Below, piece after piece: positions 23,402 to 31,095 of a stretch of 64,000 nt of DNA; within the stretch, counting starts at the first letter, position 1, and each line of letters opens with the position of its first letter. This DNA comes from Ramazzottius varieornatus. Taxonomy: Eukaryota > Animalia > Tardigrada. A model generated the notes under the pieces. It did not search any database, had not been told where the DNA came from, and worked only from the letters and a program-made list of their open reading frames with translations. Position numbers and translations under genes: made by a program. Location of the stretch: assembly GCA_001949185.1 (NCBI GenBank), contig BDGG01000010.1:753773-817772 (forward strand). The letters run 5' to 3'.

Positions 23402-23887
23402 CTACGGTTTCACTTCCGACAAGGAAACATTTTTCGACGTCACGTCCCTGTCTTCACAGCCAGCGGAAAACCGTTGCAGCAGCACGGTATCCAAAATGTT
23501 CTTCAGAACATTCTCAGCAGCTATGGTCATTAGAGAGATAGCTTCCGGTTGAACAGCGCACAACTGTATCTTGTTCGAAGGATTCTCCACTTCGTTGCTC
23601 CGGTTGGCCTTAAGGACAGCTTTCATGATACGCTTCATGAGAAGCCGCCTTTCTGGTGTCTCCTCCTTGTCCAGTTTGTAGAGTTCGAGGCACAAGTCTT
23701 GGTGGAAACGGAGAAGGGAAGGATCAGGTACTCCGCGATCTTGAACGAAGTGATGGAACTCTGCATGGTCAAATTTGCTAATCAGCCAGAAATGAAGCCC
23801 CAGTGCGTAATTCTTGCGGGCTCCTTCGTTCGACGCTGAAACAAACGATCGAGTTATTTCACCGTAAAGCTCTATTATGCGTTCCAT
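23402..23887 (-). CDS. Compact TADA1/Ada1-like (SAGA) protein, about 161 aa
   Basis: NYALGLHFWLISKFDHAEF...RFHQDLCLEL resembles the Tad1 N-terminal segment. VQPEAISLMTIAAENVLKNILDTVLLQR resembles the Ada1 histone-fold helix. Confidence 0.55.
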   Translation of the reverse strand: MERIIELYGEITRSFVSASNEGARKNYALGLHFWLISKFDHAEFHHFVQDRGVPDPSLLRFHQDLCLELYKLDKEETPERRLLMKRIMKAVLKANRSNEVENPSNKIQLCAVQPEAISLMTIAAENVLKNILDTVLLQRFSAGCEDRDVTSKNVSLSEVKP

Positions 23888-24535
23888 CGAAATGATCCAG
23901 TAGTGGAACAACCGAACAAGGCAGGAATGGCGAATGAGTGATAAAGTCCTAAAGAATTAAAGCTGAAGAAAAGACTGATAAGATGAGTGAAACGACTGAA
24001 ATCGCAAAAGGAGAACGGATGTCTGAGTTTAATCAATGTTTTAGCTGGTAGTCAATCAACCACAGGTGAATGAATACCTGTGACGTCATGGACCCACTAG
24101 CGCTTCCGTCCGTCGATACATAGCTTTGAAAAATCGAGCCCGTTTCTCGCTGGAAACAAAGTTCCGCCACTTGCCGGTCACGACCGGTGTATCTTACTGT
24201 TCCTTTCATGGTAAAAATAAGATACAATGCAGCAAAAACTATAGGAAGCAAATAAGGAGAACAATGCGGCAGAAACTATACGAAATGAGACGACATGATT
24301 TTCTCCAGTGCGACATCAACCATTGGTCCTTAAAACTTCAGCCAAGTTCCACGACAACAGTACAAAATAAAACAGAGTCAGCTTGATGAAAGTTGTAGAT
24401 CTTGGACGGCTACTTTTCCAGAAGGAACGTCTCTCAAATACTGAAGGAAAAACTTCGGAAAGAGCTTCAATTTTATGAGCAAGTGAATTGTGACAATAAA
24501 TGGTTTTAATTTCTTTCTTCCATGCTCACAAAGTC

Positions 24536-27500
24536 TTAAACGTAGGTTCGATCAGCTCGCGTGATGGTCTCTCGGCAGATTGGGCATGCAGTAACCTTCG
24601 GGGCGCAGTGAACGCAGGTGACCAAGTGTCCACAAGGCTCGAAGCGCATGGCGCGTGGGGCATCTTCGCAAATGACACATTCGGGCTGTTGTTGTGTCTC
24701 CGTTGGAACTGCAAAGAGACCAGAACTGAAATACCGAGAACCAGAAACGACAGTCTGTAACAGCTTACACAGGTTTTCGATGTCATCCAGACGGTTAGCT
24801 TTAACATAGGCGATGGACATTGCTATCTTCAGTGCGGGGTCCTTGACAGTCTTGGATGCCATTTCGTAGTAACCCGCTGCATGGTCCCAGTGTCCTGCGA
24901 AAGCGCATTTACCTGAGTCATTCTTCACCAGAGAACCGATCCAAAGAGGAGTCAAAGTCAGACACTGCGGCACTTACTTAAATCGCCCTTCTGCTTTATG
25001 GCAGCGATGACATTTCGGTAGTTATCAGGATGTTCAGCTTTCTCGTAGACGACAACGGCACCTTCGACGTCGCCGACTTGCATGTAAACGTCCCCAACAA
25101 AGATCAGATGTTCCTTCTCATCCGCATTATCGGTCACCCAATGCGCCAAGGAGAGCGCGTGGTCTTTTGTAACCTGTAAACACGGAACAAGCAAAGTCCA
25201 TGAGCTATGTAAACTTATAAAAAGCCCCGCTTAATAATGAACTGTAGAACAGGTAACACCGTAACAGGAATGGGAGCACCGGCAAACGGCTTTGGCCAGA
25301 TCGTTTTCTCAAGTGGCGCACGCTCTCAGCCAGTAACAGCGGAAACGTGCACTTTTAATGACGATCTGGGTGGAATCGTTTGCTGACGTTCTAAATATCC
25401 TTAGGTTCTTGAAACACGGGAGATGGCAACGAACGGAAGACTATACAAAGAACGTACCTCAAACGAGAATTGTCTCGTTACAGGATCGAAGTAGCTCTCG
25501 CGTATTTCTTTGATGATCAAGTTGCTGATTTTTCGGGACGAGGTGGTCAAGGCCGTGACGAGCACAGTCAGTGGATTGTAATGCGTGTAGTTTTGTAGAT
25601 ATGCAGAGAAAACATGCGTCTCAACGTCTGGAAGCTCACAGAGCATCTCGAGCATGTTTTCTTCCAGTGTCCTGAAACATACCTTCATCGTCGCTCCTGT
25701 ACGGAACGTCGGCAACAATTGACCCAGATCGTTATCTCAAGCGGCGCACATATTCATTGTGTTCGGCTGAACGTGTGCGCTACTCGGGAAAACAATCTGA
25801 TTTCATATGTGCCCGCGTCCAATCCGGCAACGGATAGATAAACAAGCTAAAACCTACCTGAAAACTTTCTCCTCGTTCTCGAACGTGGTTTTCGCAGCTA
25901 AGAATTTACCGATAAGATCGGTGGCGAAACCCGAAAATACCACTTTCAAGGTAGGGAAAATGGCGAGGAACACGGCACAGTCGTTCTTCAACAGCACCTC
26001 TGCATTGTCGAACTTTCCCATTTCTTGCGGAATTTGATTTCGTAGATGGGTCAGAACGGCTTTGCCCAAGGTGAGCCCTTTGGGCAGCATGTGAGGGTTC
26101 TTTATGACATTGAGCCACAAACTCACATCCTCGGACTTGGACAAGTAACCACTCAGTTTTTCAAGGCGAGCCGTATCGGCTTGAACCAACTAGAAAACAT
26201 ACAAAAACAGATTCGGTTGGAATGTTTCATCGCTGAATCAGTTTCAAAATCGCATACCTTGAACAGAGCTTCTGAACATTCTCCCTTTGCGTAGACAAGT
26301 AGCGCTAACTGAGGATGAGTCTTCTCTAGAGTATTCCCCAAACGTTCGCTCTGTTGTTTCGTCAACCTTCTAAAATCCACCAGTTATAACTGATCATTCG
26401 TAAAACTAAAGTCGGACTTAGGAACCGAAACGGTGTGTCTCTCTAGTTCTTACCCCAAATACTCCATAAGTTCTTCGTGCGCCGGTTCCTCGCCATAGGA
26501 AGCCAGCAACAACGATACTAAGCGTTCGTCCGAACTCTCCGCCACTAATTTCCACAACTGCTTCCTCACAATTTCCATCCTGTAATATCGAAACGCTATT
26601 ATGATCAAAGTTAAAAACTACGTTAGCAGAAAATTATGCAAACTTCCGCTTACTTTCTGTCTCCAGCAAAGATGTTCAGAAATTCCTGCGTGAAGTTAGC
26701 TGGCTTTAGCAGGTCGACGTAGGCTTCGAACAGAGCATCAGCGATGTCAGCTTCCTGAAGAGCTCGAAATATCCGAAAGATACTCCCGATTTGCTAAAAT
26801 CGAAGGTACTGTAACTTTGAATACTTCCATCAATGTATTTCCATGAATGAAAATTTTCCACACACCTTCTCGATTAGCTGCTTGATTTGAGGATACGCGC
26901 GTTGCTTTAGGTTATACTTGACCAGGTCTTCCACGAAGCCAAATTTCACGCAAAACCTCGGGTAGATGGCCGCAATCTCCGGAACCGTGTCCAGGGACTT
27001 GTGCAGCACCGTCTTCGCGGCAACAGGATCGGTAATTTTGAGAGTGAAAAAGGCGTGCTCGATGGCGTGGTACTGACCCAGAGTGATTGCCGCCTACAAA
27101 AATAGCAACACTGACAACAGAGTTCCTTCCTGCGCGGCCACAGCTATATTTTCACTGGATCAAGCAAAGAATGCGAAACAACGTACCTCCAAGTACTTCA
27201 CGAGTAAGCGAGAGTCAAGATTCGGTGTTCCCACTAGACTCAACAGAGCTGATACACCTTTCGCTCCACAGTACTTCTCCACGACGACCAGCGGCTCGTC
27301 GACTCCCGTCTTGTCTAGATACTTCTTGGCCAGCATGAGAATAAGAGACATCAGACTAACGTCGCTCTTCAAGAAGTAACCGTACAGCTGTAGTAGCTCT
27401 TCCCTCGTCAAGTACTCTGTTACCTCACAGGCACGTCTATAGCCTTCTGCGCTAGTGGTAACAAAATCCGGGAAGATGTCGTAGAAGTCTTTCTTCGGCT

Positions 27501-29313
27501 TGAAGAAAGACTGCTTCTCCTGGGAAGGTTCTGTTGTCTCTTTGTGAATTAACTCGCGCAGTGCAGTGATTTTCTCCACTATTTTCTGCGGAACTCCGGC
27601 CGGAAGTGGTGGGTATTTGCTTGGAGGCTGCGACAGCGCTTGGAAAACCTATCCAGCAAGACAATATTTCTGCCATTGCGTAGGCAATCACAGAAACCTC
27701 ACGTTCCACTTACCGTGCCGTTCGCATCGACCAGGATGATGCCCGACTTGTCCGAGCGTACAGTCGATGCTGTGATTCTGAAGCGAGAAATTCGGCTCGA
27801 ACCCACGTACTTTCCATTCTTTAGCAGACAAACATGGATGTAACTCAATTTGGTTACAATAAAGATAACCTCATGCTTCTCCACAACCTAAAAAACAGAA
27901 ACTATGCTGAAGCACAATGCCAGTCGATTATGGAAGGCTATCATGGTTGGAAGATAACATTACTGTAATGCTTCTTGAACTTCGCGAATTACGTAACAGT
28001 GAGCGTGTGCTGTATGCGTCATCATTCCGGTAAACCCTACGCGCACTGCGACGTTACTTCGCGAAGTTCATGAAGCATCACAGTGATTACGTGGCGCATA
28101 CATGAATGGCTATCGGAGTATCTGTCATGCCCATATCATGATCCCTTTCACACTGAAACTCTTCCTGGAACCTCAAGTAACTAGGAACTCCTTCATTTTC
28201 GTCCAGAGCGAAAAACGAGACCAGCGTCGAGAATTTATGCTCGCCTGCACGAGCAACGATGGCGTCGCTGCACGATTTTTTCGTGTAGATCGTGCCAGCA
28301 CTCGTGGTCAAATTCAGCTGTGGAAGTTCCAGGTCGTCCAGTTTCAGGAACACGATCTTCCGTAGGGAGCCCGACGCATCCTAGGACAGCGAATTCATAT
28401 ACCGGAACAAATAATTTTACAGAGTAAAGATTTCAGTACCTCTTCCAAATCGACTTTGTCTGGCAAAGCAGTACACACTGCCCATTGTTTGTCAGCTGTA
28501 GTTTCACATCTGTATGGGTTCTTCACGACAACTAGAGCGTAGACATGTCCTGTGATGTTCACTCGTCCATCCAGGCGAACATCGAGAGCTGCGATTCTCG
28601 TGTTGGTCAGTATCAGGATGCTTTCATGACCATTCCATACCACGAGGCGGATACGTTCAGGACCCAAGTTCATTTCGACTTTCTTCATTTCGCCCAGCTC
28701 GAACGGCTTTGTGGATTCCTTCGAGATCCAGACGTTCTCCAGATCTGCGAAAACCGAAGGAAAGTGAGTACCGAGCCAGAAGAAATAAACGACAACCCGA
28801 CTGTTTGCCTCTAACCCCACCAAACTCGCGCACAGCTCAAATAGTTCCCCAAACGCCGCTGGACACGCGCATGACGTCATGCATAGCGCATGTGTAATTA
28901 CATACAACGGCGCACCAGCACAGCTCTGCACCACAATGACGTTATAAACCAGCATACCGTAAATGATGCAATATTTGCCAGTTGGATCCACTGCGCATTT
29001 TGTGGCTTCTGCATACAGTCCATACGTATCCAGAAATACATCAAAGCGAGAAACCTTTACTGGTGACTCTGGTGTTCCCAGATCCACGATGCTGACGATG
29101 GATTTTGTCCATTCATCGGTGGAACGAGTGATAGTAAGGAAACGATCCGAAGTCAGGTTGACGTGCACTCTGCCGAGATAGCGACTTGCTCCCGGTACAT
29201 GCTTCTCCAGCTGTAACGCAAAAGTTAAGACGTGCGTTTTCAGCCAGCTTGAACGTACTTACTTCTAGTAGAGTTGAGAGTATAACAGGAGGAAAATTGC
29301 CAGAGGAGTTCAT
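24536..29313 (-). CDS. Divergent clathrin heavy chain-derived protein with C-terminal IAP-type RING finger, multi-exon
   Basis: Collinear clathrin-like segments: LTSDRFLTITR...VSIVDL (propeller start), PIAIHV/EKHEVIFIVTKLSYIHV...SRIS...GIILVDANGTV (propeller end), LEKTHPQLALLVYAKGEC, KLSGYLSKSEDVSLWLNV, YEKAEHPDNYRNVIAA, AYVKANRLDDIE. Ends in CVICEDAPRAMRFEPCGHLVTCVHCAPKVTACPICRETI. Confidence 0.85.
25309..25355. repeat. Family C core (clathrin-RING intron)
   Basis: CCAGATCGTTTTCTCAAGTGGCGCACG... with degenerate right arm and ACGATCTGG. Confidence 0.7.
25737..25787. repeat. Family C core (clathrin-RING intron)
   Basis: TCAAGCGGCGCACA...TGTGCGCTACTCGGGA. Confidence 0.7.
27963..28083. mobile_element. 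MITE family A, copy 1 (intronic in the clathrin-RING gene)
   Basis: TIRs CTGTAATGCTTCTTGAACTTCGCGAA ... TTCGCGAAGTTCATGAAGCATCACAG, flanked by TA and TG. Confidence 0.75.
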
Positions 29314-30069: not shown

Positions 30070-31095
30070 TCAGCGATTCTGAGAAGCCTGCCCACCAGCG
30101 CCAGGGAACCCTGGCTGATATTTGGGATAAGCATTGCTGCTACCTGGAGGAGATATGAGACCCTTTCCCGTGGTCATCGCGAGAAGCAAAGCATTCGTGT
30201 CGTTAACATCATGTGTCAGTGGTATCTTGGATAGTCCGGCTGTGATAGCAAAACAATAAGCACGTGCAGGATGCAAGTTGTGGTGGTCACCGTTCCATAC
30301 CTGTTTTGCTTTCCCACGCTTCCTTCGCGGCGGACAAGCTTTCAACCAAGGCTGATACAACCTTGTTCAAGTTCTGTACTTGTTTGTCAGCTTTCTGCGA
30401 CAGTTCGGCATTGTTGGGAGGGACTTTGTAGTACGCTTCCTGAAAACGGTGCTCCACTTCCGGTTCCATTTTCGACCGGAAGTAGTCGGGAAATTTGTCG
30501 TGACTCATCACAGGTATCCGGCCTTCTGTCGTCTTCTGTAAAAATATCTGATATATATAAAGCGCCAGGTAATACTTCTGCAGCGAACACTCACTTCGAG
30601 GCCTGGATCAGTTTCCGCGCTAACGAGAAAAGGAATGACATCCATTCGTCGCATATCGGGAATTCTTTCGCTCTTCACGATTTTGCTTAGGTTGGCCAAC
30701 TGACTGGATATTGTACTGAAGCGATCCATTATGGTGGGCCTGAAAAACATTTCTTTATAGTCCGAAAGATCGGAGTAAGAACCAGATGAAAGCATACCAG
30801 GATAGGGAATCAGGCTGTGTTTCGATGTATTGGAGTAATCCACTGATAGCTGCTTTTATCTTCTGCAAGTTCTCCGCAACGGGATCGAGGCCATCCACTA
30901 AGGATGTCTGTGGCGCTCTTGAACCTGCTGTTGTACCCAGGCCACCTCCTGTGAGGTTCGGATGTAAGGAAACAGATCCTGCTCCTCCGTGTGGATGCTG
31001 AGGCCGCAGCTGCAGAACGAGAAAACAAAATGGTTCATGGGTCTCACAGTTAATTCTTGTTACTTCAGTCACCTCTCGCACTCCCCACATACCAT
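30070..31095 (-). CDS. MED8: Mediator subunit 8
   Basis: SW/PTIMDRFSTISSQLANLSKIVKSERIP, VIPFLVSAETDP, TEGRIPVMSHDKFPDYFRSKMEPEVE, DTNALLLAMTTGKGL. ATG directly followed by a GTATGT donor. Confidence 0.9.

Follow-up and report, generated by a model that had tools for sequence, protein, structure and literature searches.

How does a gene that begins like clathrin heavy chain (CHC) come to end in a RING domain, and what could its product do? The question is raised by a locus of the tardigrade Ramazzottius varieornatus, within a stretch of 64,000 nucleotides (contig BDGG01000010.1, positions 753,773 to 817,772 of the forward strand), hereafter the window. On its minus strand, from 29313 to 24536, we predict a clathrin-RING gene of 15 exons from the DNA and from the location of each exon junction. 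A previous sequence-only reading had described it as a fast-evolving duplicate of CHC that runs directly into a C-terminal RING. Our analysis agrees: collinear similarity and shared gene structure indicate that the gene is a CHC paralog by descent, and one that is evolving fast. Its structure, its homology, and its conservation in a second genus further indicate that it is an intact protein-coding gene carrying this fusion. Taken as a whole, the evidence is best explained, in our judgment probably though by no means certainly, by a remodeled clathrin copy acting as a RING E3 of the IAP type on a clathrin-derived scaffold.

Descent from clathrin heavy chain

Exon 6 of the gene, used in a HMMER search of the whole library, led to a protein of Hypsibius exemplaris (OQV24916.1 / A0A1W0XBP0, working label P0005) of 1034 amino acids, automatically named "putative clathrin heavy chain" and carrying both PF00637 and PF13920. 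We used this ortholog as the query for full-length searches and for folds, and the window gene was compared exon by exon. Against bovine CHC, the ortholog gives a collinear match (E value of 4e-32), in which its residues 291-405 align with CHC 258-369 and its residues 448-974 with CHC 682-1192. Five segments of the window gene match the canonical clathrin gene of the same genome in collinear order, and a profile-profile comparison of the N-terminal domain gives 98% probability (E 4e-13, 347 columns). The best-conserved clathrin segment is exon 5 (27714..27887), which corresponds to propeller blade 7 and contains EKHEVIFIVTKLSYIHV...SRIS...GIILVDANGT. It matches CHC 267-324 in the PDB (E 3e-5) and the canonical clathrin of its own genome (E 3e-7, z 14.9), and it is 40% identical to OQV24916.1 299-356. 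The resemblance to clathrin that had been noticed by eye is thus beyond chance. It is also uneven: exons 3, 4, 9, and 12 have no detectable similarity to clathrin, and exons 2-4 taken as one open reading frame (ORF), exon 7, and exon 11 each lack a PDB clathrin match.

The separate canonical gene that a duplication would leave behind is present. Our search covered 55,842,812 bases in 200 contigs and placed it on contig C12, at about 1040.4-1049.4 kb, where it is split into many short exons. It is about 80% identical to mammalian CHC over CHC 85-172 and retains T87, Q89, F91, K96, K98, Q152, and I154. It also keeps the C-terminal part, since its alignment to the reference clathrin reaches residue 1633 of 1720. 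The clathrin-RING gene is the sole copy of its kind in this genome.

The introns bear on how the copy arose. With the canonical exon borders read from the DNA of C12:1039000-1048999, ten introns of the paralog have the position and phase of a canonical one, and an eleventh agrees in phase and order. In phase 0, paralog intron 1 corresponds to canonical intron 1 (between STLLE and LEKH in the paralog, EHAQ and LQNV in the canonical gene, and placed 8 residues past a conserved Pro in both), intron 4 to canonical intron 4 (AIH and VVEKH, AMQ and TSQKY), intron 5 to canonical intron 5 (NGT and VFQA, KGQ and VLSV), and intron 6 to canonical intron 10 (KYLE and AAIT, KYIQ and AACK), while introns 7 and 10 fall at positions common to both genes (canonical introns 11 and 14). 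Three more are in phase 2. These are intron 8 (canonical 12), in the codon preceding an L/M-K/E... motif, intron 9 (canonical 13), 14 residues ahead of an EK(T/R)(H/D)P motif, and intron 11 (canonical 15), which splits an Arg codon in both genes. In phase 1, intron 2 interrupts the same codon as canonical intron 2 (CIIY-D-LENVW in the paralog, IALK-S-GRTLQ in the canonical gene), and intron 13 lies, like canonical intron 16, two residues ahead of a conserved Trp. Intron 3 has the phase and order of canonical intron 3, with flanks too diverged for alignment. Canonical introns 6-9 map to a region lost from the paralog, and intron 12 is specific to the paralog, falling within canonical exon 16. 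Because positions and phases are common to both genes, this pattern indicates that an intron-bearing CHC gene was duplicated at the DNA level. For the same reason, the common introns give independent support to the predicted splice model. As an observation in its own right, intron 12 (25174-25457) is the longest of the gene, with 284 nucleotides, and may be a gain in the paralog or a loss in the canonical gene.

Could the gene instead be a diverged subunit of HOPS/CORVET, such as Vps11, Vps18, Vps41, or Vps8? These proteins have the same layout of propeller, solenoid, and C-terminal RING, and in a language-model (ESM) atlas OQV24916.1 lies nearest to the clusters of Vps11, Vps18, Vps39, Vps41, and Vps8 (0.85-0.92). 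We read this nearness as architectural likeness (propeller, solenoid, and C-terminal zinc finger) and not as kinship. The sequence-only reading had preferred clathrin to these families, and the searches bear it out. At E<=1, OQV24916.1 matches none of the Vps family N-terminal or TPR domains (PF23341, PF05131, PF23411, PF23410, and related ones), and its PDB matches at this threshold include no Vps chain, compared with 4e-32 for CHC. The intron positions are those of clathrin, the RING is a C3HC4 of the IAP type, and ordinary Vps11 and Vps18 genes are located on contigs C4 and C5. We therefore rejected membership of the Vps family, and consider this origin effectively refuted.

Gene structure and conservation

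On the minus strand the gene takes the form of successive open segments, with brief intervals between them that contain stops. Its coding sequence opens with an ATG at 29313 and closes with a TAA at 24538-24536, so that its ends coincide with those proposed from the letters alone. It comprises 3168 nucleotides, i.e., 1056 codons followed by the stop, with no internal stop or frameshift, and all of its 14 introns (52 to 284 nucleotides long) are bounded by GT and AG. Every peptide that had been quoted as clathrin-like or RING-like lies in an exon of this model.

The first five exons cover the N-terminal domain. Exon 1 (29263..29313) encodes 17 amino acids, MNSSGNFPPVILSTLLE, the counterpart of the CHC N terminus, and ends at a GTAAGT donor. 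Exon 2 (28958..29210) encodes blade 1 of the propeller and the start of blade 2; it aligns with the canonical clathrin of its own genome (local alignment z 7.8, BLASTP E 1e-3) and with OQV24916.1 23-99 (E 1e-9). The middle of the domain, at blades ~2-4, is encoded by exon 3 (28440..28744), which is strongly diverged: pairwise it matches the ortholog (OQV24916.1 104-155, E 0.03) and not clathrin, and its placement is based on collinearity and on the global profile alignment (hhalign 98%). Exon 4 (28102..28380) spans blades ~4-6, and its end ...TPIAIH corresponds to ...FPVAMQ of clathrin. After the conserved blade 7 of exon 5, exon 6 (27187..27648) encodes 154 amino acids that open with the beginning of the linker, pass through a family-specific stretch, and go on to the counterpart of CHC ~682-733. 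This exon stands in for canonical exons 6-10, and about 310 CHC residues are absent. The loss here, CHC ~370-680, takes in the remainder of the linker as well as the ankle and CHCR1.

The distal leg follows. Exon 7 (26866..27093) is a helical repeat equivalent to CHC ~734-810, has both its borders at canonical introns 10 and 11, and is matched in BLASTP by its own clathrin (E 4e-3), by residues 750-806 of the sequence labeled P0007 (E 5e-5), and by OQV24916.1 500-577 (E 3e-11). Exon 8 (26654..26793) is 38% identical to OQV24916.1 582-620, and exon 9 (26454..26579) is assigned to the distal leg by the splice model. Exon 10 (26258..26369) encodes the CHCR segment LEKTHPQLALLVYAKGEC, counterpart of CHC 902-936, with matches to CHC in the PDB (E 0.01), to the canonical clathrin of the genome (E 9e-5), and, weakly, to PF00637. 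Both borders of exon 11 (25858..26189) are those of canonical exon 15; it covers CHC ~937-1030 of the leg and includes an insertion of about 21 amino acids. Exon 12 (25458..25671), also in the leg, is strongly diverged and placed by the splice model. Exon 13 (24978..25173) brings the knee region, where YEKAEHPDNYRNV is the counterpart of CHC ~1130-1150; it matches OQV24916.1 880-927 (E 5e-9), and residues 870-974 of the ortholog align with CHC 1092-1192. The last clathrin-derived segment is exon 14 (24769..24894), which contains AYVKANRLDDIE and runs to ...AYVKANRLDDIENL, corresponding to CHC ~1155-1192. It matches the canonical clathrin (E 2e-4) and is 40% identical to OQV24916.1 930-971, and its donor sits 11 codons ahead of the border of canonical exon 17.

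Beyond CHC ~1192 nothing of clathrin is left, and a linker of about 11-21 amino acids leads to the RING. The light-chain-binding proximal leg and the trimerization domain are thus missing from the paralog, as had been claimed. Nor is there a full CHCR leg (ankle, distal leg, knee, and proximal leg), since the aligned part is restricted to CHC 258-369 and 682-1192. In clathrin, the proximal leg and its light-chain site, the trimerization domain, and a C-terminal Hsc70 motif all lie past ~1192. Because the proximal leg and the trimerization region are lost, the protein cannot form triskelia through the normal hub.

The joint between clathrin and RING deserves separate attention. The predicted intron 14 (24709..24768; 60 nucleotides, GTAAGC...TTGCAG, phase 1) is in frame if retained, and a single stop-free ORF (24973-24539) carries the last clathrin segment together with the RING. 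Hence, the frame is open whether or not this intron is spliced, as the earlier reading had it. Between NRL and the first Cys of the RING, the linker would have 16 amino acids when spliced and 36 when unspliced; the ortholog has 21, which is closer to the spliced form. This joint also speaks against an explanation of the locus as a decaying duplicate, or as a wrong merger of a clathrin fragment with a separate RING gene. Such an explanation could call on the low identity to the Hypsibius ortholog (about one-third) and on the undetectable similarity in exons 3, 4, 9, and 12. Yet the junction lies inside one ORF and recurs in H. exemplaris, for which reasons we rejected the reading as two separate genes; 15 exons run through 3168 nucleotides without a stop or frameshift, their splice sites all canonical; and exon 6 is conserved in further species. 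The next gene upstream, moreover, is a distinct one on the same strand, Med8 (30290-30855 of the window, minus strand; PF10232 in two ORF pieces, E 3e-17 and 1e-6), and the locus is thereby bounded. Decay or merger is in our view very improbable.

The comparison with H. exemplaris indicates that the gene is maintained, as it is intact in both genera despite an identity of about one-third. The window exons align in order to residues 23-1033 of OQV24916.1, with 25-55% identity per exon. Both proteins end their clathrin homology at the same residue, and we take this to mean that a single fusion preceded the split of the two genera. A neutral frame of 3.2 kb would not stay open at such divergence, which argues that the gene has been maintained. 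Two tardigrade genera at least thus conserve the predicted domain combination, and the suggestion that relatives be searched for the same fusion has been answered positively.

Exon 6 reaches further. It is conserved in four fragments from ENA and JGI metagenomes that differ by more than 10%, at 50-71% and 31% identity, and the resulting family has 15 invariant columns, including FPDF and ELL. In three of the four fragments, similarity ends directly past ...VKYLE, at the position of the window intron. In the fragments P0001, P0002, and P0006, which come from different species, the sequence continues with "AC" after (K)YLE or FE, and read-through of a GT donor would give Val. The donor after (K)YLE may be shifted in these species or be non-canonical (GC). 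Another HMMER match of exon 6, P0004 (1230 amino acids), turned out to be a low-complexity repeat and not a relative.

Outside tardigrades, searches with the whole protein, with the C-terminal region, and with an alignment returned only OQV24916.1 and one canonical clathrin, a result of low sensitivity that is weak evidence of absence. A scan of metagenomes with the junction ORF, also of low sensitivity, found nothing, and the ESM atlas contains no large cluster joining clathrin and zf-C3HC4_3. No paper in the searched literature mentions the ortholog or the architecture. The belief that no such protein had been described therefore holds for the searched literature and needs qualifying for the databases, where the ortholog is already in GenBank and UniProt under its automatic name.

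Two further observations concern the surroundings of the 3' end. An ATTAAA hexamer lies at 24505-24510 (minus strand), about 25 nucleotides past the stop, and is a possible polyadenylation signal. Just downstream, an ORF of 169 amino acids (23402-23911, minus strand) has no Pfam match.

The RING and its possible action

Which RING was acquired, and from where? Exon 15 (24536..24708) encodes a short linker, a C3HC4 RING, and a C-terminal tail ending in ...CPICRETITRADRTYV, followed by the TAA. It matches zf-C3HC4_3 (PF13920) with E 2e-13 over profile positions 2-48 of 49, and is about 50% identical to the RING of cIAP2 (3eb5, E 4e-12), aligned up to the last residues. Identity to cIAP1 is also about 50%, and XIAP (E 1e-10) and BIRC7 follow; the alignments with the cIAPs and BIRC7 end at most 1 residue from the C terminus. 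The RING is thus of the IAP type and not of the Vps type, as first proposed. All eight zinc ligands are kept with C3HC4 spacing, and OQV24916.1 has them as well. The window RING has CPICR and a tail ...RTYV, OQV24916.1 has CPICR and ...RIYLA, and cIAP1 and cIAP2 have CPICR...RTF. In both orthologs, then, the last Cys is followed by an Arg and the tail contains an aromatic residue, two hallmarks of E2~Ub activation. In studies of BIRC7 and of the cIAPs, these two features reportedly let dimeric RINGs activate E2~ubiquitin.

The other domain of IAP proteins has left no trace. No PF00653 (BIR) match was found in any window exon or in OQV24916.1, and among the BIR matches of the genome none is in or near the window, the nearest being on contig C10, about 1.05 Mb off. 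The closest genomic RING to exon 15 (52% identity) lies at C10:1835748-1835891, as the last exon of a BIR-BIR-RING gene, and both RING exons are preceded by a phase-1 intron. A terminal exon with this identity and this intron phase fits the capture of an IAP-like terminal exon. The BIR-BIR-...-RING gene itself extends over C10:1834248-1837391, about 1.06 Mb from the window, and may be related to the captured exon.

When two copies of the RING of exon 15 were folded together, a homodimer was predicted with an ipSAE of 0.39 (0.42, 0.39, and 0.32 in separate runs), compared with 0.00 for the best control. The mark of 0.39 was reached by 21 of 30 proteins solved as same-chain pairs and by none of 23 solved as single chains; on eukaryotes, 17 of 29 pairs reached it. 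At least 88% of contacts recur across the runs, with a pLDDT of 82 or more, and the interface includes tail residues 52-56. The prediction expresses likeness to IAP dimers and is not proof of a dimer.

From these elements we propose a sequence of events. A duplicated clathrin gene would have retained the N-terminal propeller, the beginning of the linker, and the distal leg as far as the knee (CHC ~682-1192). About 310 residues covering the ankle and CHCR1 would have gone, together with the proximal leg and its light-chain-binding and trimerization regions, and a 3'-terminal exon with an IAP-type RING would have taken the place of the lost end. Like the RINGs of IAPs, this RING could form homodimers by means of its C-terminal tail, giving a two-legged molecule, and could recruit and activate a UBE2D-type E2~ubiquitin. 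The protein would then be a RING E3 ligase with a diverged clathrin-like propeller and leg as its targeting module. As to function, we infer a RING E3, probably a dimer, that would be targeted by the clathrin-derived propeller plus distal leg. The conjectural side of this proposal takes in dimer formation in the living cell, E3 activity, the substrates, and the site of action.

The same dimer can be read differently, and this is the main rival of an E3 ligase: the RING could be mainly an assembly or dimerization module, and the protein a structural variant of clathrin, e.g., a two-legged modulator of coats, a decoy for partners of the propeller and leg, or a capper of lattices. The RINGs of the look-alikes Vps11, Vps18, and Vps8 have assembly roles, OQV24916.1 is near these proteins in the language-model search (0.90-0.92), the predicted contacts fall in the dimer interface, and the leg keeps clathrin similarity across about 510 residues. 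A RING serving for assembly is harder to reconcile with features that both orthologs retain and that E2~Ub activation, not just folding, requires: an Arg directly behind the last Cys, the CPIC Pro, and an aromatic residue two positions from the C terminus. We consider this explanation unlikely, if clearly worth keeping in view.

An E3 ligase on a clathrin scaffold should itself be accepted with caution, since several results weigh against it. One difficulty is the propeller. The earlier reading suggested that an adaptor-binding propeller may recruit the substrates, an idea that the comparison does not support. Only blades 1 and 7 can still be aligned to clathrin (z 7.8 and 14.9), blades 2-6 cannot, and the middle of the propeller in exons 3-4 has no detectable clathrin similarity. 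We compared the clathrin box by an ungapped hand alignment anchored on NPASKVIAL/DPTGKYCII, a blade alignment of low confidence. With this limit, the sites of T87, Q89, F91, K96, and K98 are occupied by N, W, S, K, and F in the window gene and by A, W, V, D, and T in OQV24916.1, so that Q89 is replaced by Trp in both. The clathrin-box residues thus appear not to be conserved, recruitment through the classical site is not supported, and no mode of substrate recognition can be named.

The structure models bring little relief. In an AlphaFold2 model of OQV24916.1 built from a two-row alignment, pLDDT is below 50 at residues 1-395, so that the propeller could not be modeled; the mean pLDDT is 48, and confident helical hairpins occur only at leg residues ~420-700. 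Foldseek on this model ranks clathrin 1xi4 first (E 3e-9), with very low template-modeling scores and many generic solenoids among the matches, which adds little. The dimer score, in turn, may reflect the memory of the model for solved IAP dimers, and both E3 activity and dimerization are read from the sequence. Finally, low-sensitivity protein searches did not recover a public protein model of R. varieornatus.

A bolder extension would be a tardigrade "two-legged clathrin," in which the IAP-type RING replaces the hub and the dimer docks on clathrin coats or other membrane-traffic machinery and ubiquitinates coat components or cargo. We offer it as a speculation that is more likely wrong than right. 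If it were true, evolution would have made a coat-targeted E3 out of a coat protein and arrived independently at the propeller-solenoid-RING design seen in Vps11 and Vps18. Because RNA interference is established in Hypsibius exemplaris, the function of the gene is directly testable there.

Relation to known clathrins and RING proteins

To our knowledge, CHC is among the most conserved eukaryotic proteins and nearly always comes from one full-length gene; CHC22, the only animal paralog that is well known, retains the complete architecture. In the present case, a duplicate has been radically remodeled: the hub was removed, the ankle deleted, the surface of the propeller rewritten, and an IAP-family RING added, and the product was kept in at least two genera. 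This would make it a clean and datable case of exon shuffling creating a new scaffold for a predicted E3 ligase. It further offers a natural experiment to learn what parts of the clathrin leg can work outside the triskelion, with the limit that the gene is so far known only from tardigrades.

Within tardigrades, the ortholog of H. exemplaris is alike in length (1034 and 1056 amino acids), in exon-by-exon collinearity, in its deletion, and in the type of its RING. It differs in that identity per exon is only about 25-55%, and it carries no more than an automatic name. Compared with CLTC, the paralog has an N-terminal domain of corresponding overall length with homologous blades 1 and 7, and a distal leg equivalent to CHC 682-1192. 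Unlike CLTC, it lacks CHC ~370-680 and 1193-1675 and carries a RING, and its identity from one tardigrade genus to the other is about one-third. CHC22 (CLTCL1), the heavy chain paralog of vertebrates, is likewise a lineage-restricted duplicate with a diverged function. It is nonetheless full length, trimerizes, shares about 85% identity with CHC17, and carries no additional domain.

The remaining comparisons concern the RING. With the RINGs of the IAPs (cIAP2/BIRC3 3eb5, cIAP1, XIAP, and BIRC7 4auq), the tardigrade domain shares the C3HC4 ligands, the CPICR motif, the aromatic tail, and, by prediction, homodimerization through that tail. The clathrin-RING protein differs from IAP proteins in having no BIR, UBA, or CARD, and in bearing its RING on a clathrin-derived propeller and solenoid. 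With Vps11, Vps18, Vps8, and Vps41 it has in common a beta-propeller, an alpha-solenoid of the CHCR type, and a C-terminal RING, and it departs from them in the subtype of the RING and in belonging to none of these families by sequence.

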